The notes under the pieces: model-generated
The model's database searches: none
What the model saw: the letters and a program-made list of their open reading frames with translations, nothing else
Told to the model about the DNA's origin: nothing
Position numbers and translations under genes: made by a program
NCBI GenBank assembly: GCA_965240325.2
Contig: OZ251230.1
Location: forward strand, 930,001-994,000
DNA: 64,000 nt
Direction: 5' to 3'
Source: Rebecca billardiae RCC1528
Taxonomy: Eukaryota; Protista; Haptophyta
Shown here: one piece after another, positions 1,861 to 14,266 of the stretch
How positions within the stretch are numbered: the stretch's first letter is position 1
How the letters are laid out: every line of letters begins with the position of its first letter

Positions 1861-4314
1861 TCAGCACGCAGTGCGCGTGCTACTGCCGCTGCTGCTCGGA
1901 GGCCGTGCACAGCAGCGCGCGAGCTGCTCGAGAGCGCGCAGCTCTGCGCCCAGGCCGGGCGCATGCTGCGAGTCCTCCCGCTCGAGGAGGTCGGCCACCA
2001 CCACGCGGAGCCGGCCCACGCCGCCGTCGGGAGCCCCGCCGCGCCGCTCGGTGCACAGCGCGCGCTGCGTCTCCGCCCACGCGCTCAGCAGGAAGTGGCC
2101 CTCCGCGCGCGCCTGCTGCGCGCGCGCGAGCTCGCGCTCGAGACGGTGCCGCGCGGCCGCGGCCACGGCCGTGCGCGTCGGGGTCGGCGCGCCCGCCGAG
2201 GAGCTCGCGGGCAGCGGCGAGACGTGGAGCGGGGCAGGCTGCGCCGAGGCGGGCGGCTGCTCGGCTGGGCGCGTCGCCGCCGCCTCCGCCGCGCTCCCCT
2301 CGGCAGAAGCGGCGCCGGCGCGAGCGGGCGCGCGCGCGCCGCCGTGGCCGAGCGCGGCGTCGGGCAGGGCCGTCACAGCCGGCGGCGCGGCGGCGCCGCG
2401 CTCCGAATCGGCCGGGGACGCGACGGTGCCGCCGGCCTGGGAGCCCGCTGGGTCGGGCGCGCGCGCAGCGCTTCGCAGCCCGCCGCCCGGCGTGGCGTCG
2501 AGCGGGCGCGGAGCGGGCGCCGCCGGGCTCTCGGGCGGCGGGCTCGGCGGCTGGGTCGGCGGCGCGCTGGGCGGCGCCGATTCGAGCGCGCCGCGCGCGC
2601 CGCTGGCCTGGAGGCCTGTGAGCCTGTGCAGCGCGCCATGCAGATTCGACCGGAGCTCGCGGTGCGCGGCCTGCCGCGCGGAGGGCGGCGCGGGACGCGC
2701 GGGCGGGCCGGCGCGACTCGCGCTGAGCGACGCTGGCCGCTGCGTGCGCGGCCCCACGGCCGGCCCTGCCAAGTGGCGGCCGCGCGTGCGCGTGCGCGCG
2801 CGCAGCGCGCTCGCGCGGCGCGCGCGGCGCGCGCGGCGCGGCCAGCATGCGCGTGCGCGGCGGTGCGGCGCACCTCGAGCTGGCGCGCGTGCGCGGCGCG
2901 CTCGAGCAGCGAGTCGTGCGCGTGCAGCCACGCGCGCTGCCGCTCCACGTACACCGCCTCGAGGCAGCGGCTTCGGAGGGCCAGCTCGCCGAGCGCGTAG
3001 CGCGCGTGGCCGAGGCAGGCGCGCGCCTCGGCCGCGTCGGCGCGCGCGGCGCGCGGCGCGGGGCGCGCGCGGCGGGGCGGACGCTCGCGCGAGCCGAGCA
3101 GCCCGCCCTCGCCGTGCGCCGCCTCGCCTACCGCCGCCGCCTCGCGCACCGCCGCGCCCAGCGCCGCGTGGGCGCGGCGCAGCGCCGCGCTCAGCTCGCG
3201 CGCCGCGGCCGCGCGCGAGCGCGCGCACGCTGCCACGGCCGCAATCGCGGCGGCCTCGCGCGCAATGAGCAGGGGCTCGACCGGCGTGAGCAGCGCGCCA
3301 GCGCAGCCGTCCGCCGCGCGCGCCGGCGCCTCCGCGCGCCACGCGCCGCCGAGCGCCGCGCAGCGCACCAGCCGCGCCAGCGCCGCGCCCGTGCGCTCGG
3401 CCGCGCGCGCGTGCGCGGCGCTTGCAAAGTCGAGCGCTCCCCGAGCGCCCTCCCAGCGCGCGCGCGCGGACGCGGAGGCGCCGGCGTCCGACGGGGCCGG
3501 CTGCGCGCGCCCCGGCCAGGTGCGCGGCAGCGCGGCGGCCTGCGACTGCGCGCCCTGTGCCCACGGCCCCGCACCGTCGCGCCGCGCGCCGGAGCGCTGG
3601 CCGCCGTCCGCGCTGTCGGCCGCCGCCGCCGCGGGCGCGGCGCTGGCGGCGGCGCGGCGCGGCTGTGGCGCGCTTGTGCCGAGTAGAAAGTGAAGCACAC
3701 CGCCCACGCGCGGCGCGCACGCGCGCCACAGCCGCTCCGGCGCGTTCGCCCGGCCCGTCGCCGCGCCGCGCCCCTGCAGCTCCGCCTCTGTCGCCTTGAG
3801 AGCGAGCAGCGCGGACGTGACGAAATAGCCGCCGCCGCCGTGGGCGAGGCCGCCGCGCGCGCTCAGGTGTGCGTCGAGAGCGCTGAGCTCGGCGATTGGC
3901 CGGCGCAGCCGCGCGCGGATCACGACGAGCTGGAGCAGCGGCAGCAGCCGGTCTGCGGAGAGCTGCGCGGGCGCAGCGCCGCGCGGCGTGGCCGTGCGCC
4001 CGGCGGGCGGCGAGGCCGCCGCCGCCGCGGCGGCGGCGGCGGCTGTGGGCGCGTCCGCGCCCCCTACGGCCCCTGCCGCTGCGCACGCCTCCGCCCCGTC
4101 CGCCCAGCCACCGATCTCTCTCTCGAGCTGCGCATACGCGCGCACGACCGCGGCGACCTTTGCGGACGGGGTGGGCGCGCGCCGCACAGCCTCGAGCGCG
4201 CGCACGGCGCCGCTGAGCAGCGCGCGGGGGCGAGGGGTGCCGTCGGGCGTGCACCCTCGCCCATCGAGCTCGCGCGCGCGGCCGGCCGCGCGCGCGGGTG
4301 TGGTAGTGGTGGGC

Positions 4315-4346
<32 letters not shown>

Positions 4347-5595
4347 TTGCTCGGCGCGCGCCAGGGCGGTGTCTGCGAGGGCGCGGAGTGGGGTGCGCGC
4401 GTCGTGCGCCGCGGCCGCGCTCGGCCACGCACCGGCCGCGCCCGCGCCCGCCGTCGACGCCCCCGCCCCCGCCGAGCCACGCGCCGAGCGCGCGCCGCCG
4501 CCCCGGCCGGAGGCGCCGGCCGCGCGCTCCGCACCTGAAGGGGCGAGCTGAGCGCCGGCCGCGTCCGGCGCGGCGGGCGGTGGCGTGGCGGCGCGCGGCT
4601 CGAGCGGCCCGGCGGCGGTGTCCGCGGCGAGCGTCTCCGCCTCGCCCAGCACGCCGAGCGCGCGCGCGAGCTCCGCGTCCGACGCGTGCTCGCGCAGCGC
4701 GCGCAAGTCGCGTGCAACCAGCCAGTCAGCGGCCGAGTGCTGCGCCACGTGCGCGGACGCGATGGCACGGCGCGCGCCGCGCGCGAACGTGCTCTCGACG
4801 GCGGAGGCCCAGGGCACGGCCGCGGCGGAGGGCTCGGCGGGGCCGGGCGCGAGCGCCGCGCACACCGCCTCCACCCAGCGCGCGCTCGCATCCGCCACCT
4901 CCGCGCCCGCGCCGCCGCCGCCGCCGAGCGCGGCCGCCGGGCCGCTGGTCGGGGCGGGGCTCCCCGCGCTGCCGCAGCCCGCGGCCGGGTGCGGCTCGCC
5001 GCCGCCGCCGCCGCCGTGCCGGCGGGGCGACGGGGCGCTGAGCGGCGAGCCGAGCGAGGGCGCGGGGCTCGCGTCGAGCCCGCGCGCGCCCACGCCAGCC
5101 CCCAGCCCGCCGCCGCCCGCCGCCCCCTGCGCCAGCTCGGGGAAGCGCAGCGCACACGCCTCGAGCACAGCGCTGATGTCGAGTGTCGCGTGCGCGGCCG
5201 TGCGCGCGTACGCGTGCTGCGCGCCGAGCGGGTGCGCGGCGCACGCGCGGTGCCACGCGCGGATCGTGCGGCGCAGCGCGCGCAGCAGCGCGCCCGCCTC
5301 CGCCGAGCCCAGCACGCCCGACAGCCCGTACATCAGGCAGCGCGCGGGCGCGTGCGCGCGCGCGCCCAAGCGCCACGCTGCCGCGCCGCCGCCGGCCGCG
5401 CCGCCGGCCGCGCCCGGCGCTTGCTGCGGCGCGCTGAGCTCCAGCCGCCCGACCTCGTCCTCGCGCGCGTGCTCGCACACGATCAGCGTGCCGCCGCCCA
5501 GCGCGGGCGCGGCGCGGCGCGCGCGGCGCCCACGCCCGTCCGCGCCGCCCCCTTCGCCGCGCTCAGCCTCGTCACTGCCAGAGCGGCGCGGCGCT

Positions 5596-5641
<46 letters not shown>

Positions 5642-6981
5642 TGCCGCCGCCGCTGCCGCCGCCGCTGCCGCTGCCGCTGCCGCTGCCGCTGCCGCTGCCG
5701 CTGCCGCTGCCGCTGCCGCTGCCGCCGGCGTCTGAGCAGCCGCTGGCGTCAGAGTCGGAGCTGCCGCTGGCGTCGGCGTCGGAGTCGTCGCTGCCCTCGT
5801 CGGCATCGCCCGCCTCCACGCCGCCGCCGCCGAGCATGAGCGTGATCACGGCTGGCCCGTCCAGCAAGCCGCGGCGCCACACGCCCGCGCACCGCTCCCC
5901 GCCTGGGCGCGTGCGCACGCCCACGCCCTCAGGCCGCCCCGCGCGGAAGCCGCCGACGTACGAGAGGAGCGGCGGGCGCGCGGGGCTCGCGGGCGCGCGG
6001 CACGCTGCGCCGCGCCCGCGCCGCGCCGAGCGCTCCGGCTGTGCTGCCGACGGCGCGCCGCGCGCCGCGCCGTGCGTGAGCGCGCCTTGGCCGTGCGGCA
6101 GACCATGCGCCCAGCCGCCCGAGTAGACGGAGCCGTCCGCGTACACGCACGTGCCGTGGCCGTGGCGCTGGCCGTCGCGCCAGCCGCCCGTGTACACCGA
6201 GCCGTCCGCGAGCGTGACTGCGCGGCGCGCGCGCGGCGGAGCCGGCGGCGCGGCGGCCGCGGCGAGGGCGGCGCGCGCCGCGCGCGCCGTCGGCGGGCCA
6301 AGGCTCTCGGCGTGGGCGCCGTGCGTGTCGGCGGCGCTCGCGGGCCGCGCGGCCGCGCGCAGCGCCGCGGTCGCGGCGCACAGCTGGCCGTGCCAGTCGT
6401 CCAGCGTCGGCTTGTCCGGCAGCGTCAGGAAGAAGATGGCCTCGCCGCCGCCGCTGCCGCCGTAGCCGCCGCCGACGCCGCCGGGCGCGCCGCCGCTCGC
6501 GACACCGCCGCTGCTAACGGCCACGCGCGCCGCGGGGCACTGCTGCGCGCACGCCGCGAGCAGCTCGTCCGGCGCGGCGCCAGACGCGGCCGCGCCCGCG
6601 TGCAGCGCGCGGATGTGCAGGGAGGGCGGCGCGCCCGCGGCGCCCGCCGAGCCGCCGCCGCCGTCCGCTCCGCTGCCGCCGCGCCACGCCGTCGCACACG
6701 AGGGCGCCGGCGCCCCGTACACGTCAACGATGCTGGCGAGCGCCACGCACGCGCCCACCGTCCACTGCGGCAGCGGCGGCGGCGGCGGCGGCGCGGGCGG
6801 TTGCGGCGGCGTGGGAGACGCGGCGCAGCCCGCGGCGGCGGCGGCGGCGGCGGCGGCGCCGAGGGCGCCGCCACCGCCCGCCGAGGCGGTGGCGCTGCCG
6901 GCCGCGGCCGCCGCGGCCGACGCCACCGCAGCGACGCCCGCGGCGGCGAGCGCGCTCGCTCGCGGCTGCTGCGGCTGCTGC

Positions 6982-7017
<36 letters not shown>

Positions 7018-10000
7018 GGCGGCTGCTGCTGCTGCGGCGGCGGCGGCAGCGCCCTCGGCGCGGCGGCTGCTCGCTCGAGCTGGACGAGGCAGTCTGAGAG
7101 CAGCAGCACGACGCGCTCTGCCCGCGCGGCCTCTGCCGGGGGCGGGCGGCCGCACGCGCCGCCGCACGCTGCGCCGTGCTCCGCCTCCGCCGCCGAGCCG
7201 GCGTGCGCGGCGCGGCGGGCGAGCGCGCGCGTGCGCGAGGCCGGGCCGGGCTCTGCAGCCCCGGGGCCGCCGCCGTGCAGCGAGGCGCGCGCGGACTGCA
7301 CGCGCGCCAGCCGCGCGCTCGGGTGCACGCAGTAGCGGAGCAGCTGCCGCGCTGGGCTGAAGATGAGCGCCGCCGCCGCGTCCTCCGCGCCCGCGCAGCA
7401 GCGCAGCACGCCCACCAGCTGCTGGACTCGCTGCCGCGCGCTCGCCTGCGCCAGCACCTTCTCCGCCGCCTCGCGCACGGCGCACATGGCGCGCCACGCG
7501 CAGCAGCAGTGCGCGCCGGGGCGCGCGGCGCGCGCGGGCGCGTGCGCCGCCGGGTCGGCCACGCAGCAGATCGAGTCGGCCGCCAGCAGCCGCAGCAGTC
7601 GCTCGCTGAGCGGAGGGTGGCCGCTCGCAACCGTCGCCGCCTCCACGGCCGCGTGCGCGCGCGCGCAGCCGCCGCATCCTCCGCCGCCGGGCGCGCAGCC
7701 GCCAGCCCGCTCGTGCGGCTCGGCGCCGAGCGCACGCGCGCCTCCAGTGGCCGAGGGATGTCCGGCCGCCGCCGCCGCCCCGACCGCGCCCCCTGGCGGT
7801 GCGGACGGCGTGAGTACGGCCGAGCCGCGCGCGTCGACGCCGGCCGCGCGGCAGCCGCCGCGCTCGGCCGCGCCCCACCCGGCGCCGCCGGCAGCGTCGC
7901 GCGCCGCCCCGCCCGCGGGCGCGTCCTCTGCCCCTGCCTCGGTGGCGGTCAGGAGGAGGCCCCGCTGCAGCGCGATCGGCCCAGCCTCCTCCGCCTCGCA
8001 CGCCCCCGGCTCCGGCGCCACCGGCGCGAGCGCGGCCGGCCGGACTGGCTGCGCCGGTACCGGACCGGCCGGCTGCGGCGCACCCCCGGCCGCACGCGCG
8101 TCTACGTGAGCGGCTGCGCGGCCGGCGCGCTCGGGCACCGGGGCCGTCGCCGAGGTCCGCGGCTCGAGCTGCGCCGACTCGCCGGGCGCGTGCGGCGCCT
8201 CTGCGAGCGGGGCGCGTGCAGCCGCGTCGTGCCGCGCCGCGTCGGCGCCAAAGTCCAGCTGCCGCGGCTGCTGCCCTGGCTGCCCTGCGGCGCGCAGCCA
8301 CTCGGCGTCGGCGGCGGCGCCATCGGCCTGCGCTGGCGGCGCGCCGGCAGCAGCAGGCGCGCGCGCGCCGTCTGGGGCCGTGCCGTGCGCGCCGCCCGCC
8401 GAGCGCGCGCTCGGCGGAGCGTGCGCCGCGCCCGCCGCGGCACCCGTGCCGGTGCCCTCGCCATGCCCGCCCGCGGGCCCCGCCGCGCCGCCGCCCGCCG
8501 CGCTCGCGCGCGGCGCAGCCGGCTGCGCGGCCGACGCCGCGTGCGGCGTGTGCGCGTGCGGCGTGTGCTGCAAGTACGGCGCCCAGTCCGACGGCGGCGC
8601 CGCGTCCGCGGCCAGGCTGAAGCGGTGGGCAAAGGCGAGGAGCAGCGGGTACTGGCCGAGCCGCTTCCACGGCAGCAGCAGCAGCTCCTCCACCGAGCGC
8701 GCACACGACGCATCCGCGAGCGGCGGCGGCGCCGCCGCCGCCCGGCCGGGCGCGGGCGACGCGCGCGCGGCGCCGGCGTGCGCGCCGCCGGCGTCGGGGG
8801 CGAGCGCAGCGCTCGCCGCAGCTGGCGACGGCGGCGGCGCGGCCAAGGGTGTGCTGTGCCCGGCCGTCCCCGCGCGCTCCTCCTCGCTCTCGCCCGAGCT
8901 CTCCTCGGCCGACGAGTTTGGCGAGCCCGCAAGATCCGCAGCGGGCGGCGCGCCGGGCGGCGCGCGCTCCGGTGTCGGCGGCAGGCCGTGGCGCGAGGGT
9001 GCCGCCGAGCGCGCGCGCGCGCGGCGCGAGAGCCGCAGCCGCCTGCGCCACGCGTGCACACGCGCCACGTCGCAGCACTGCAAGAAGTGCGCGCCCTCGC
9101 GCAGCAGCGAGACGGTCGCGGGGTGCAGCAGCAGCTCCTGCAGCTGCGAGTGCAGGCTGCCCAGGAAGCGGTGCAGCTCGGTGTCGAGGAAGGCGCGCGC
9201 GAGGCCGTGCACCGCCAGGGGCGTCGGGAGCGCGCGCGCCGGCGGCTGCTGCGCGGGCGCGCGGGCGTCCGGGCTGGCGGGCTCGAAGACGGCCGAGCCC
9301 GCCCCGCGCGCGTGCACCGCCACCGCCAGCCGCACGCACAGCACCTCGTGGTGCGCCGCGAGCGCCGAGAGCGCGTGCACGAGCGCTCGCAGCTGCCGAT
9401 CCATCTGCCCCGCGTCTGGGAAGTGCGTCTCCGGCCGCGGCGACGCGACCGTGCTGCCTGGGCCGCGGGAGGGCGGCGCGGGGCTCTCCTCGCCGGCGGG
9501 AAGGGGCGTCGTGCCCGCGGGCGTGCCGGCCGGCTCGCCCTCGGCGTGCGCGACGGCCGCCTCGCTCGACGCCGACGGCGGGCACACGCTGAGCTCCCGC
9601 GGACGCGACGCGTCTGCGCCCGCGCGCGCGCACGCGGCGGGGCGCTCGGCTCCGCGCAGCGGGGAGGCGGCGAGCGGGGCGTGCCGGCTGCCGGGGTCGG
9701 GCTCGGCCGAGGCCGCGGCCGCTGCCGCGGCCACCGCGGCGATGGCGAGCCCGCCCGAGCCGCTCGCCGCCACCTGCTGCGCGCGCGTGCTCCCCCCGCC
9801 TCCACCGTCCCTCCGCGCGCCGAGCGGCGAGCACTCGGCAGCCGCGCGCGCGAGCGGGTAGGACCAGGAGTGCGAGCGCCTGTGCTGCAGCGCGCGCGCG
9901 GCGACCGCGCGCACGCCGCTCCGCTCGACCGCCGCCAGCGCCGCCCGGCCCGGCGAGACGCCGCCCGCGCCGAAGGATCCGCCCTGCCCGTCGGCGGCGG

Positions 10001-11387
10001 GCTCGGCGGTGGCCAAGCCCGCGGCGCCGGCGCCGCGCGCGGCCGGAGCGCGGCGCGCCCACCACGCAGGAGCCTCGGCGCCGTCGGCTGCGGCCTCAGC
10101 GCGCGCGGGCGAGGGCTCGTCCTCCCTGCCGCCGCGCGACGCGCTCGCGTCCGCCGACGCCGCCACGTGCAGCTGCAGCGGCAGCAAGTAGCTCCCAAGT
10201 AGCGTGTGCATCGCCGCGACGAAGGGGCGCTCTGTCGCCAGCAGCTCGCGCAGCGCGCAGTTGCGCGAGCGCAGCGCGCCCTCGGTGAGCGCGAGCCAGC
10301 GGCACGGGCGCGCGTCCGCGGCGGCGGCGTGCGCGAGCGGCGGCGGGCTGCTCCCCGCGGCGGGCACGCGCACGCACAGCGCGGCGATGCCGCACGCGCG
10401 CAGCGCGCACACGCGCCCCTCCCAGCGGACCAGAGCCCCGGCGGAGCCCCACAGCCAGGCCTCGCCGCAGAAGCGGAGGGAGGAGGAGGTGTCCGTGAGC
10501 GCGAGCGTGAAGCCGTCGCCGCACACCGCGTGCGCGATCGCGCGCCCGTCCAGCTCGAGCTCGCGCGGCCGCGCCACGCGCTCGCCGAGCCGCGCCCCCA
10601 GCTGTCCGCTCTCGGCGCGGCCCCACGCGTGCACGGCGCCGCTGGCGCAGCAGGCGAGCGCGTGCGTGGACGAGAGCGAGAGCGAGAGCACGCCCGCGTC
10701 GCGGAGGGCGCGCAGCTCGATGGGCGCGTGCGCCACCCCGCCGCCCGCCTCGTGCCCCAGCTGCGGCCCGCGGCCCCACGTGAACACGCGGCTCTGCCAC
10801 CGGCCCGTGTCCACGCGCCTCCGCTGCAGCACGACTGCCGAGGCGTGCCCGCCCGCCGCGACGTGCAGCGCGCGCCACGCGCCGCGATCGCCGCCGGGTG
10901 GCAGGGCCGGGTGGCCGCACACGCGCTGGGACTCGCCGAGCCCGAGCTCGGGGCCCGGCGCCTCGCCGAACGCGAGCACGCGCGCGTCGGCGCAGCGCGC
11001 GAGCACGTGCGACCAGCCGCACGCGAGCTGCGCCACGGCCACCCCGGCGGCGGGTGGCGCGCGCACGGGCTGGAAGGCCGCGAACGTGCTCGCGGATACG
11101 ACCACGCCCGTGTCGAGCGCAGCCTCGACCACGCGCTGGCCCGCGGCGGTCAGCGCGTACAAGCGGCGGCCGTCGCCGCGCGCGGCGAGCGCGCTCAGCG
11201 GCTCCTCGAGCGCCACCGACGTGGCCGCCCCTGTGCCCACGTCCAGCACGCGCAGGATGCCGTCGCCGAGGAGAACCGTGTGCTCCCCCACGGCCACGAC
11301 CGCGCAGACGTCGTCCGTGGGCAGTGGGCGCCTCGAGCATGCCGGCCGAAGGCCGTCATACTCGGCGACGCCCACCGAGGCCGCCAT
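1861..11387 (-). CDS. ALS2: Alsin (ALS2)-like Rab5/Rac GEF: RCC1 repeats + DH(RhoGEF) + PH + MORN + VPS9, ~3100 aa, at least one intron (2671-2873)
   Basis: RCC1 motifs: LACGWSHVLA, VFTWGRGPQLG, VHAWGRAESGQLG, VCGDGFTLAL. DH: LRELLATERPFV...LLLPWKRLGQYPLLL. PH: VLLLSDCLV...DDWHGQL. MORN: YTGGWRDGQRHGHG, YSGGWAHGLPHGQG. VPS9: SADRLLPLLQLVVIRA...GYFVTS. A phase-0 GTGCGC..GCAG intron joins RQLE|AAHRELR and reaches the stop at 1861. Confidence 0.85.
5598..5726. repeat. Coding (GCC)n/(GCCGCT)n microsatellite encoding a Gly/Gly-Ser linker in the alsin-like protein
   Basis: Directly visible tri- and hexanucleotide run. A (CTG)n poly-Gln run also occurs at ~6965-7035. Confidence 0.95.
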
Positions 11388-11567
11388 TGATCGGCTTCCC
11401 GTTCGCGTTGACTGCGGGGCGTTTTTTTCCGGCCGAAAAACAATCGTGGATGCCGATGCAGACCAGGCTATGCTCTGCCACCAGCGCCGACTTCGTGTCG
11501 ACGATCGGGCACTGCCGACGACGAATCAGGAGACCTGCGCCGTCCTACCTGTGTCGTTAAATCATAG

Positions 11568-12572
11568 AATGAGTCAGACGAGCAGGATGGCCAGCCAGCC
11601 GGGCGGGACGGCAGCTACAAGGTGGGAAGCTTACACTCTACCATCGTCAGCGTCACCACCCACATCCACCACAAGCGCCTCGAGCTAGCTACAGCTGGGA
11701 CGGAGGGCCGCCAGCGCCGGTACGACCTCGCGCACTTCCTCACCGCTCTCCGCCGCGGCCGCCTCACAGGGGGAGCGAGCCCCAGAGATGGGCAGACCCA
11801 GGGATCGTCCGCCAGCGGCCCAAGACTCACACCCTCCCCTGACCGAACACAGGGCCCCCGACCCCCATCAAGCAGCCAGGAGGGCCCAGCAGGGGGGCGC
11901 CAGCCCCCGGCCGGCAGCAGGGCCCCTCCACCCCCTGGCCCACTGGCCCAGCAGGAACCTGGCCAACAGGCCCTCAATGCCTACTATGCAGCAGCTGAAC
12001 TGCAGGATGCTGACGTCGATGGCACTGGTGCCAACTGCGGGTTCCTTGCGGTACTGGGCGTCACCCGCGCAGGGGCCCGCGAAGACCCAGCAGGGGCAAC
12101 CAGGAGCGCCCAGGCACTGAGGCAAGCCACCGTACAGCACGCCCTGTCCCTGAGTGCGCAGCACCAGGGGGTCCTGGCGGCCGCAGTGGCCCTCCAGCCG
12201 GCCCACCTCGAGCCCGATGGGAGCGCACAGAGGGCAGCAGCAGCGGCTGCCACCCTGGGCACGGTTCGAGAGGCTGGCACCCCGTTGGCAGATGCACTCC
12301 TCCCCTGTGTGGCAGCAGGGGCGAACACCACAGTCGTCCTGGTCACCAGAGACCCTCACACCGGCGCCCCTCTTCGTATGGTCCAGGTCTTCCACAGCCC
12401 AGGCTCCCCCCAGTACAACCGGCACGACCCGCTGCACATTGAGGTGCTACCCTGGCCCCAAGTGGCCACCAGGCTGGCAGCGGGCGCACTCGGACAGACC
12501 AGGGTCATCTCTCACTGGAGAGGCCATTACAGGACCACAGTCCCAAGGGCACTGCCAGGTCAGGCCCACTGA
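11568..12572 (+). pseudogene. 5'-truncated ORF ending in an OTU-like cysteine protease (deubiquitinase) domain
   Basis: DVDGTGANCGFLAV (Cys codon 12036), ALRQATV helix, GTPLADALL..VA..ANTTVVLV, and ISHWRGHY (His codon 12525) follow OTU motif order. The frame is open from 11568 with no ATG upstream of the domain. Confidence 0.65.
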
Positions 12573-12752
12573 GGCCACGGGCCCGCAGGCAGGACTCAGG
12601 CTGGCCAGAGGCCCCTGCTGGGGAGGGTGGGGGAACTGCCCAAGCGCCGGGGGGGGGGGGGGGGGGGGGAGGAGGAGGACGAGCTCAACCAGAACCACCA
12701 GGCCCAGCAGAGACACGACCATCCCCCACAAGTACCGGAACCAGTCCCCGAC

Positions 12753-13110
12753 GGCGAGTCCAACTACTACTAACTTCGGCGAGTCCAACTACTACTAACC
12801 TCGGTGAGTCCAACTACTACTACTAACTTCGGCGAGTCCAACTACTACTAACTTCGGCGAGTCCAACTACTACTAACTTCGGCGAGTCCAACTACTACTA
12901 ACTTCGGCGAGTCCAACTACGACTACTAACTTCGGCGAGTCCAACTACTACTAACTTCGGCGAGTCCAACTACTACTAACTTCGGCGAGTCCAACTACTA
13001 CTAACTCAGGCGAGTCCAACTACTACTAACTTCGGCGAGTCCAACTACTACCAACTTCGGCGAGTCCAACTACTACTAACTCAGGCGAGTCCAACTACTA
13101 TTAACTTCGG
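12753..13110. repeat. Tandem minisatellite, 14 units of 25 bp (GGCGAGTCCAACTACTACTAACTTC)
   Basis: Counted directly. Units 3 and 7 have an extra triplet (28 bp); units 10 and 13 end in TCA. No unique spacers. Confidence 0.97.
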
Positions 13111-13480
13111 CCACAACATCACCCACCAGCTGCTGACCAAGAACAGGCTACACCATCGTCCACCATGACCTGCCACTGACCAAGTAGGCGACGACATCAT
13201 CCGCACCAGCTGCTGACCAAGTAGGGGACGGCCTGGCCGACGCCAACATGCTCACTCGCCTTTGATTTCGTACCCATGCACTTCCTGGTGGGCCTGACGA
13301 CGTCCGGACGACGACAACAACGACATCCGCCATGGGGACCAACATCAACGCGCTCACACCACTGCCACTGCTGCAAGCTTCGACCAGTACCACTACAGAC
13401 GAATCAGGAGAGCTGCGCCCTCGTGCCTGTGTCTTTAAATCATAGAATTAGTCGACGGGCGGCGTAATGGTGCGCACTGC

Positions 13481-14266
13481 TCAAGCATGCCGTCGCAGCC
13501 ACTCGCGACTTCGCAGGTCCGCCTGGCGCACGGGCTCGGGCACGCGGTGACGGCAGCACTGCCGTGTCATGCTGACCGCCGTCTCCAGCGTGACGCCGTG
13601 CCCGATCGAGATGAGGAGCGGCTTAAAGTCGCCGCCCTCCGCCGGGTCTGTCGTGCGCAGCGCCGCGCCCCACACGCGCCCCGACGTGCCGACCAGCTCG
13701 GCCGCGTCGCCCACGCCCACGCAGCGCTCGCGCACGAGCGCTCGCACGCTCTCGCGCGTCAGCCCGTCGACGCAGTGCAGCGACTTGCCCACGCCGATCG
13801 TCGGTATCCCGGCGAGCACGCCCAGGTGCGAGGCGAGGCCAAAGCCATGCGGGTGCAGAATGCCGTTCCCATCGACCATGATCAGCTCGGGCGCGAGCTC
13901 GGGATGCTCAGCGCGCAGCTCGCGGAGCAGGCGGAGGAGAAACCCCACCTCGCGAAAGGCGAGGTACCCCGGCACGTACGGCTCGCGCAGTGCCACACGC
14001 TCGCAGCGCTCGAACACGACCGAGAGCGTGCGCGCGTCGAGCACGACGAGCGCAGCGCACGCCTCCGTGAGCGAGTCCTTGACGAAGCTCACGTCAACGC
14101 CGCCGATGCGCTGGACCGACGCGGGATCTCGGAGGTCGCGCTTCGCGAGGAAGAGCGTGCGCAGTACCAGCTGCTGCACCCACCACCACAGCGTCTTCAG
14201 GCGCGCCGGCACCCACGACCCCATCGCTGTAGCAACCAAAACCAATCCGGGAGCGGAGAGCGACAT
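13481..14266 (-). CDS. ENDOV: Endonuclease V (inosine-specific)
   Basis: IGGVDVSF, PYVPGYLAFRE, MVDGNGILHPHGFGLASHLG, IGVGK, ISIGHG, RVPEPVRQAD. The start could instead be the second Met. Confidence 0.95.
   Translation of the reverse strand: MSLSAPGLVLVATAMGSWVPARLKTLWWWVQQLVLRTLFLAKRDLRDPASVQRIGGVDVSFVKDSLTEACAALVVLDARTLSVVFERCERVALREPYVPGYLAFREVGFLLRLLRELRAEHPELAPELIMVDGNGILHPHGFGLASHLGVLAGIPTIGVGKSLHCVDGLTRESVRALVRERCVGVGDAAELVGTSGRVWGAALRTTDPAEGGDFKPLLISIGHGVTLETAVSMTRQCCRHRVPEPVRQADLRSREWLRRHA

Follow-up and report, generated by a model that had tools for sequence, protein, structure and literature searches.

The haptophyte Rebecca billardiae RCC1528 carries, in a 64,000-nucleotide stretch of contig OZ251230.1 (assembly GCA_965240325.2, positions 930,001 to 994,000; hereafter the window), what appear to be the remains of two retrotransposed elements, one inside the other. 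The larger, at 11451-13453 on the + strand, is a 5'-truncated copy of a long interspersed nuclear element (LINE), here called family A, whose second open reading frame (ORF2) ends in a domain predicted to have the OTU fold. The smaller, a short copy at 11464-11575, belongs to a second family, B, whose 3' tail of 56 nucleotides (nt) is homologous to that of family A. The locus was very probably produced by two successive retrotransposition events, with B nested in the 5'-truncated A, and not as one repeat-bounded unit. The latter had been proposed in a first-pass annotation of the window, made from its letters alone, in which an OTU deubiquitinase reading frame and an array of 25-bp units were described as a module lying between imperfect direct repeats at 11520-11575 and 13398-13453. 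These repeats are present; each is 56 nt long, they are in direct orientation 1,878 bp apart, and they are identical at 50/56 positions. The module itself was not upheld, since sequence of family A lies beyond B, at 11451-11466.

Family A in the genome

A search of the 72-Mb, very GC-rich genome with window positions 11520-13453 recovered dozens of copies on many contigs, at 94-100% identity (regions of the genome carrying copies are numbered L001, L015, L053, etc.). Most of these matches reach the last base of the query and their 5' starts are scattered, and the approximately 25 family-A copies that were examined end at the same 3' base, beyond which the sequences are unrelated. Walking in the 5' direction led to a full-length element of 8,985 bp, with three copies that have both ends in common and are 99.8-99.9% identical to one another; L053:222-9206 serves as the full-length reference. 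A 27-mer from the family-A tail has 300 matches in the genome and the control has none. The earlier suggestion that the window holds the 3' part of a multicopy mobile element, truncated on its 5' side, was thus borne out, both by the genome copies and by the longer element. Two other candidates for the element's start were discarded: the common match start at query base 53, where the copies concerned continue upstream with sequence absent from the window, and the 5' end of L002, from which further walking gave the 8,985-bp element. Both false ends arose because the comparison was made against a truncated copy.

The element contains an ORF1 of 522 aa, without any Pfam match, and an ORF2 of 2,159 aa whose ATG overlaps the ORF1 stop codon as ATGA (L053:1793-1796), an arrangement that suggests coupling of the two frames by termination and reinitiation. 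An apurinic/apyrimidinic (AP) type endonuclease domain, Exo_endo_phos, was found at ORF2 residues 43-270 (26.5 bits; Pfam cut-off 24.5), N-terminal of a reverse transcriptase domain, RVT_1, at residues 744-1011 (79.4 bits; cut-off 29.6). In the C-terminal part of ORF2, a CCHC-type Cys/His motif near residue 1760 is followed by a conserved segment of helical character, then by a Pro-rich linker and, at the very end, by a domain of ~200 aa. At least six copies of family A retain an intact ORF2, with an open frame of 2,170-2,171 aa. Neither long terminal repeats (LTRs) nor terminal inverted repeats (TIRs) were found in the family-A copies, the sole direct repeat, at the window locus, being explained by nesting.

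Judged by these domains and by the form of its copies, family A is classed as a LINE, that is, a non-LTR retrotransposon, of the AP endonuclease (APE) type. The Penelope-like, Helitron or Ginger affiliation considered in the first-pass annotation did not survive the 5' walk, which gave ORF1 and then an ORF2 with AP endonuclease and reverse transcriptase. Two results tell against the overall explanation of the locus. RNase H in family A had no Pfam support at E up to 1, and the 5' and 3' flanks of 19 copies, compared for target-site duplications, have only 0-3 bp in common; because such duplications are this short or absent, the insertion boundaries cannot be confirmed from them.

The truncated copy in the window

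The window copy comprises the last 1,949 nt of the element. It opens with a stub at 11451-11466 (element positions 7037-7052), split off from the remainder by the family-B insertion. The last 333 codons of ORF2 (residues ~1827-2159) and the stop codon follow at 11572-12572, collinear with ORF2 of L053. In translation no stop codon interrupts the frame between 11568 and the terminal one at 12570-12572, and no ATG lies upstream; the missing start codon is accounted for by the 5' truncation of the copy. Within it, a Pro/Gly/Ser-rich linker, seen in the translation at 11763-11939, separates the conserved segment that follows the zinc knuckle from the C-terminal OTU-like domain of 210 aa, which was placed at 11940-12569 from its predicted structure and from fold searches.

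The 3' untranslated region (UTR), at 12573-13453, is common to all copies that reach the 3' end. It contains a poly-G tract of 21 G (12649-12669), the 25-bp tandem array (12752-13111; 14.2 units, 92% matches) and a repeat of ~80-bp period, represented by the 18-mer CACCAGCTGCTGACCAAG, which occurs exactly twice in the window, at 13124 and 13204. The UTR closes with the 56-nt family-A tail (13398-13453), the downstream member of the pair of direct repeats, and the element's sharp 3' end is at 13453. The start-less reading frame, the poly-G run, the 14-unit array and the ~80-bp-period repeat had all been located correctly before, and the view of the array as part of a UTR also holds, as poly-G tract and array together form the 3' UTR and accompany the ORF in other copies. 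The possibility that array and ORF never occur together elsewhere had been raised as well; the array was found in 20 other copies, with 12-50 units, and was absent from one diverged copy. The length of the poly-G tract in other family-A copies is 13-36. An older subfamily copy, 91% identical, at L015:850-3075 has no 25-bp array at all, and the array is for this reason either dispensable or a later gain.

With the array left aside, alignment of the window copy to the reference L053 shows 3 mismatches and 3 gap positions in 1,183 aligned positions (99.7% identity), and the post-array part of its 3' UTR equals the reference at 342/342 positions. Three mismatches in ~1,180 nt, together with the identical last 342 nt, point to a very recent insertion. 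The composition of the copy sets it apart from its surroundings, in agreement with the first description of a C/A-skewed, CpG-poor + strand: C is 0.358 vs 0.273 for G, A is 0.226 vs 0.143 for T, and the observed/expected ratio of CpG is 0.54-0.65, compared with 1.28-1.32 in the flanking host genes (70-80% GC).

A family-B copy nested in family A

The nesting is read from the left end of the copy. The 16-mer at 11451-11466 is exact, occurring once in the window and once in the reference at the expected position, and the match extends no further leftward. After the family-B piece, family A resumes at element position 7051, and uninterrupted family-A copies run straight across the B insertion point. 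The B copy lies on the + strand at 11464-11575 (105-112 nt overall), with a net insert of 105 nt at ~11467-11571. At its junctions, CAG on the left and AGTC on the right are common to A and B, the AG of A is duplicated on both sides, and the insert is followed by AGAC. On this alignment, the true 5' end of the truncated family-A copy is 11451, and not 11520 or 11572, and B is nested 16 bp inside it.

The upstream repeat (11520-11575) corresponds to the 56-nt tail of family B. The B copy in the window is 100% identical over 97 nt to L015:3696-3792 on the - strand, with the same first base, and 96% identical to L015:459-541. Its homology to B extends 56 nt upstream of 11520, through sequence that is unmatched in family A. 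All six differences between the two tails are, in the upstream repeat, B-type family states; the six mismatches mark family B and are not a sign of age. The B-type tail 27-mer, which the upstream repeat matches exactly, has 315 matches in the genome at up to 1 mismatch and none with the control. A tail 23-mer occurs twice in the window, compared with no occurrence in 100 shuffles, and hundreds of times genome-wide, compared with none for the reversed control; the overall genome count of tails, 627, is the sum of families A and B.

The direct repeats are thus best understood as the homologous tails of two separate insertions, with nothing bounded by them. The upstream repeat had been explained as the 3' end of an older copy, as a long target duplication or as a Penelope pseudo-LTR, and all three give way to the tail of a sister family nested in A. 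An aged fragment of the same family was also tried for it, and was ruled out by the alignment with family B and by the 315 exact-type tails.

Proposed history of the locus and alternative explanations

In the proposed scheme, reverse transcription of a family-A LINE RNA would have begun at the 3' end of the RNA, at a nick within the ~90 bp that separate the endonuclease V and alsin-like genes, and synthesis would have stopped early, leaving the last 1,949 nt, that is, the C-terminus of ORF2 with its OTU-fold domain and the 3' UTR. A family-B copy of 105-112 nt would then have entered 16 bp inside the 5' end of A, at a CCAG/TCAGAC site, with 3-4 nt of microhomology and a 2-bp duplication at its junctions, so that the two homologous tails would now look like direct repeats 1,878 bp apart. 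Target-primed reverse transcription is the mechanism that we infer for these events. A weak point of the scheme is that the order, A and then B, is taken from the geometry alone.

The microhomology at both junctions (AGTC, CAG) would also be expected if a single event had made a chimera, the reverse transcriptase having jumped from A RNA to the 3' end of B RNA, copied ~105 nt and jumped back, as in Penelope-style or template-switch 'pseudo-LTRs'. Head-to-tail partial tandems of family A do occur at other loci (L021:3230-3512; contigs C11 and C13, as adjoining matches). Such a course, however, needs two jumps, the second landing on precisely the following base of A and duplicating AG, whereas nesting needs one event; moreover, the element has an AP endonuclease and Pfam found no GIY-YIG domain. 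It is considered very improbable. The alternatives from the first-pass annotation, in which the upstream repeat would be a long and old target-site duplication or the end of an older A copy reused as a target, are excluded. In their favour, the repeats are direct and flank most of the element, but the upstream one carries B states at all six differing positions and matches a variant of 315 copies exactly, its homology to B continues for another 56 nt where A is unrelated, sequence of A lies beyond B, and other A copies show no such duplication. The reading of the window ORF as a single-copy, spliced host gene with its ATG in an upstream exon, for which the frame open without an ATG could be cited, is likewise refuted by the dozens of copies at 94-100% identity and by the frame that runs upstream into a LINE ORF2 of 2,159 aa. 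Nesting of B in a truncated A is retained in what follows.

The OTU-fold domain of ORF2

The C-terminal domain of ORF2 was recognized from its predicted structure. An AlphaFold2 model (pLDDT, a per-residue confidence, 76; pTM, a global one, 0.76) was compared with known structures: the best Foldseek matches in the PDB are all OTU domains, with leading probabilities of ~1.0 and a best E of 1.5e-3, and VIA-align gave a Z of 11.8 to OTUD1 (145/150 residues) and OTUD3 (137/141), the top 50 entries all being OTU and including nairovirus vOTU structures. In a feature search of the ESM Atlas, the top-ranked cluster carries PF02338. Three residues are invariant in a three-sequence alignment of the domain: an Asp, Cys33 in an NC motif and His196 in an HYRTT motif. 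In the model, Cys33 is placed at the N-terminus of a helix (33-39) and His196 begins the last strand (196-202). The earlier description of a protein ending in an OTU-like domain with Cys and His kept is thus supported, as both residues are invariant and both structure searches return OTU; the opposite outcome, no match to an OTU fold, had been allowed for and did not occur.

Relatives of the domain are rare. An exhaustive HMMER search of 1.84 billion representative proteins returned only two, both from JGI/IMG metagenome contigs and 40% identical. One of the two, P0002, matches the final 490 aa of ORF2 collinearly, starting at the zinc knuckle and running through the OTU-like end (33% identity, E 4e-67), and the fusion is therefore not peculiar to this genome. 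The linker of family A is of low complexity and is variable in P0002. The conserved segment after the zinc knuckle, including the IVSVTTHIHHKRLE stretch, is also present in P0002; its model reaches a pLDDT of only 44, at which no fold beyond predicted helices can be assigned to the IVSVTTHIHHKRLE segment. Scans of metagenome loci with alignment A1 and with P0002 found nothing, and the genome contains no divergent paralogues of the OTU domain outside family A.

Several results tell against an OTU assignment. No Pfam match to PF02338 was obtained at E up to 10, and sequence (phmmer) and profile searches of the PDB with the domain returned no OTU protein. The AlphaFold2 model was built on an alignment of three sequences only, and the E-values of Foldseek are modest even at their best. 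In OTU enzymes the third catalytic residue is commonly acidic or an amide and stands two places past the His; here the residue at His+2 is an invariant Arg, in place of the usual Asp or Asn. The invariant Asp is situated 8 residues before Cys33, and it might serve as the third residue, as in A20-type OTUs. The OTU fold is nonetheless accepted for the predicted domain on structural evidence, while by sequence it does not join the OTU cysteine proteases of Pfam PF02338, MEROPS C85 and related groups.

It may be asked whether the likeness reflects a shared papain-like scaffold and nothing more, the domain being a processing protease that acts in cis, a pseudo-enzyme that binds ubiquitin or something unrelated, and not a deubiquitinase. 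The absence of any Pfam or PDB sequence match, the non-canonical third catalytic residue and the tiny size of the family, with 2 relatives in 1.84 billion proteins, all fit that explanation. Against it stand the top 50 structural matches, every one of them OTU, the best of which (Z 11.8) cover ~95% of the target domain, and the placement of Cys at the N-terminus of a helix and of His on the last strand as in OTU enzymes, both invariant at 40% identity. A scaffold-only likeness is accordingly held to be unlikely, although it keeps a real share of the probability. With the OTU fold retained, we infer that the domain may work on behalf of the element, either as an active deubiquitinase or as a processing protease. 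One natural reading, by analogy, is a deubiquitinase that would protect the ORF2 protein (ORF2p) or steer ubiquitin-dependent repair, similar to what has been proposed for Ginger and Helitron (PMC2836005). The other natural reading is a dual protease and deubiquitinase (DUB) that would resemble the tymovirus enzyme (PMC5695851).

Family B and the shared tail

Two of the three B copies examined begin at the same base (CAGGCTATGC), which suggests that B is a discrete unit of ~112 nt resembling a short interspersed nuclear element (SINE). Family B could represent either a short partner that is non-autonomous or the terminal portion of a sister LINE. An Rfam search over window positions 11380-13500 gave no match, and a tRNA, 5S or 7SL head is thus not recognisable in B.

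One and the same hairpin can be drawn for the tails of A (13398-13433) and B (11520-11555). Its pair 15/23 reads G:C in the A tail and C:G in the B tail, making one compensatory pair, and the other four differences are unpaired. The folding energies are no better than those of shuffles (z -0.35 and -1.34). By analogy with the pairs of elements discussed below, recognition by the reverse transcriptase probably relies on this common 56-nt tail, an idea that the folding energies leave as no more than a lead.

These elements can be combined into a broader proposal, in which B would be a discrete SINE-like partner of ~112 nt without a recognisable small-RNA head, mobilised by the OTU-tailed LINE through the shared 56-nt hairpin tail, and the OTU domain would be an active deubiquitinase or dual protease/DUB needed for retrotransposition, for example by shielding ORF2p or by tuning ubiquitin-dependent repair at the insertion site. 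As a whole this proposal is speculative and quite doubtful. If true, it would mean that non-LTR retrotransposons have an accessory activity new to them, and the family concerned, being young and having intact copies, is a tractable one.

Comparison with known systems

Ubiquitin-type proteases are already known to be carried by Helitron, Ginger and Mutator elements, and the OTU-tailed ORF2 of family A would add LINEs to these classes of transposons. Family A resembles the two-ORF LINEs of the APE type (L1, I, Tad1-like) in having an ORF1 and an ORF2 with an N-terminal AP endonuclease, a reverse transcriptase and a CCHC-type motif near the C-terminus, and also in its many 5'-truncated copies with one 3' end, its lack of LTRs and TIRs and the variable tandem repeats of its 3' UTR. 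It differs from them in an extra C-terminal extension of ORF2 of ~330 aa that ends in the predicted OTU-fold domain, in a fixed 56-nt tail instead of poly-A, and in target duplications of 0-3 bp.

OTU domains have been documented in Ginger1 transposases and in animal Helitrons (PMC2836005), and the PRO/DUB of tymoviruses is an OTU protease of an RNA virus (PMC5695851). As in family A, an OTU-fold cysteine-protease domain is found in these systems at the C-terminus of a replication protein; their domains, unlike that of family A, match PF02338, and the host element is here a LINE. Pfam matches to Rep/helicase or to DDE integrase-like transposases, as would be expected of Helitron or Ginger, were absent from ORF1 and ORF2 of the full-length element. 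No report of a LINE with an OTU domain was found in the full-text literature searched, a limited library whose silence is not proof of absence. Since family A is young and has several intact copies, the role of its OTU domain is directly testable.

Pairs of a stringent-type LINE and a partner with a common 3' tail have been described for UnaL2 and UnaSINE1 of eel (PMC1636434) and for zebrafish LINEs (PMC4176376). Families A and B are similar to such pairs in that two families with unrelated bodies have a common conserved 3' tail of ~56 nt able to form a hairpin. The likeness of the window locus to Penelope-like elements, in which a short copy of the 3' end stands upstream of a 5'-truncated body, is superficial: Pfam found no GIY-YIG domain in ORF1 or ORF2, and the upstream piece comes from a different family and lies within A instead of in tandem with it. 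The exotic-looking module consists of ordinary nested retroposon fragments, and two families that share a tail, one inside the other, can mimic LTR-like direct repeats.

Variation among family-A copies

Among the 19 copies compared, three (L018, L023 and L053) have CAGAC at the start of the 3' flank, as does a further copy, L020; L027 has CAGAT there. Together with the AGAC that follows the B insert, these flanks are a hint of weak target preference. Near-identical copies in L001-L030 differ in their final four bases (AGTC, GGTC, TGTC, GGTA and AGTA), and the terminal bases of the copies may be set by pairing with the target.

Other copies are rearranged internally. At L033:576-4824, a family-A copy is split by an insertion of 4,249 bp with a 10-bp duplication of element positions 6597-6606; the insert is another mobile element, here nested within the LINE. 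One copy, seen at L025:845-848 / L045:2871-2874, has cleanly lost element positions 7556-8158, and the two sides of the junction overlap by 4 nt. The deletion removes most of the OTU-like domain and the beginning of the 3' UTR.

Host genes and insertion site

The window copy is flanked by two host genes on the - strand, to both of which it is antisense. An endonuclease V gene occupies 13481-14266 (PF04493, E 6e-57), its stop codon lying 27 bp from the 3' end of the A copy. On the other side, an alsin-like gene at 2373-11387 consists of a single-exon ORF of 3,004 aa with RCC1 and MORN matches and a weak VPS9 match. Its ATG, at 11387, is separated by 63 bp from where the A copy begins and by 133 bp from the upstream repeat, in accordance with the ~130 bp to an alsin start codon estimated in the first-pass annotation.

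With the LINE material removed, ~90 bp (11388-11450 and 13454-13480) remain between the endonuclease V stop codon (13481) and the alsin-like ATG (11387). Either the two genes are exceptionally tightly spaced, or target DNA was lost in the insertion. The antisense LINE fragment occupies the place expected for the 3' UTR of the endonuclease V gene and for the promoter and 5' UTR of the alsin-like gene. The insertion splits the ~90-bp intergenic gap at the start of the alsin-like gene and may matter for its transcription. The alsin-like gene (80-84% GC) is overlapped, in other frames and on both strands, by ORFs of several hundred to more than 1,000 codons, which are by-products of a composition poor in stop codons and not genes.

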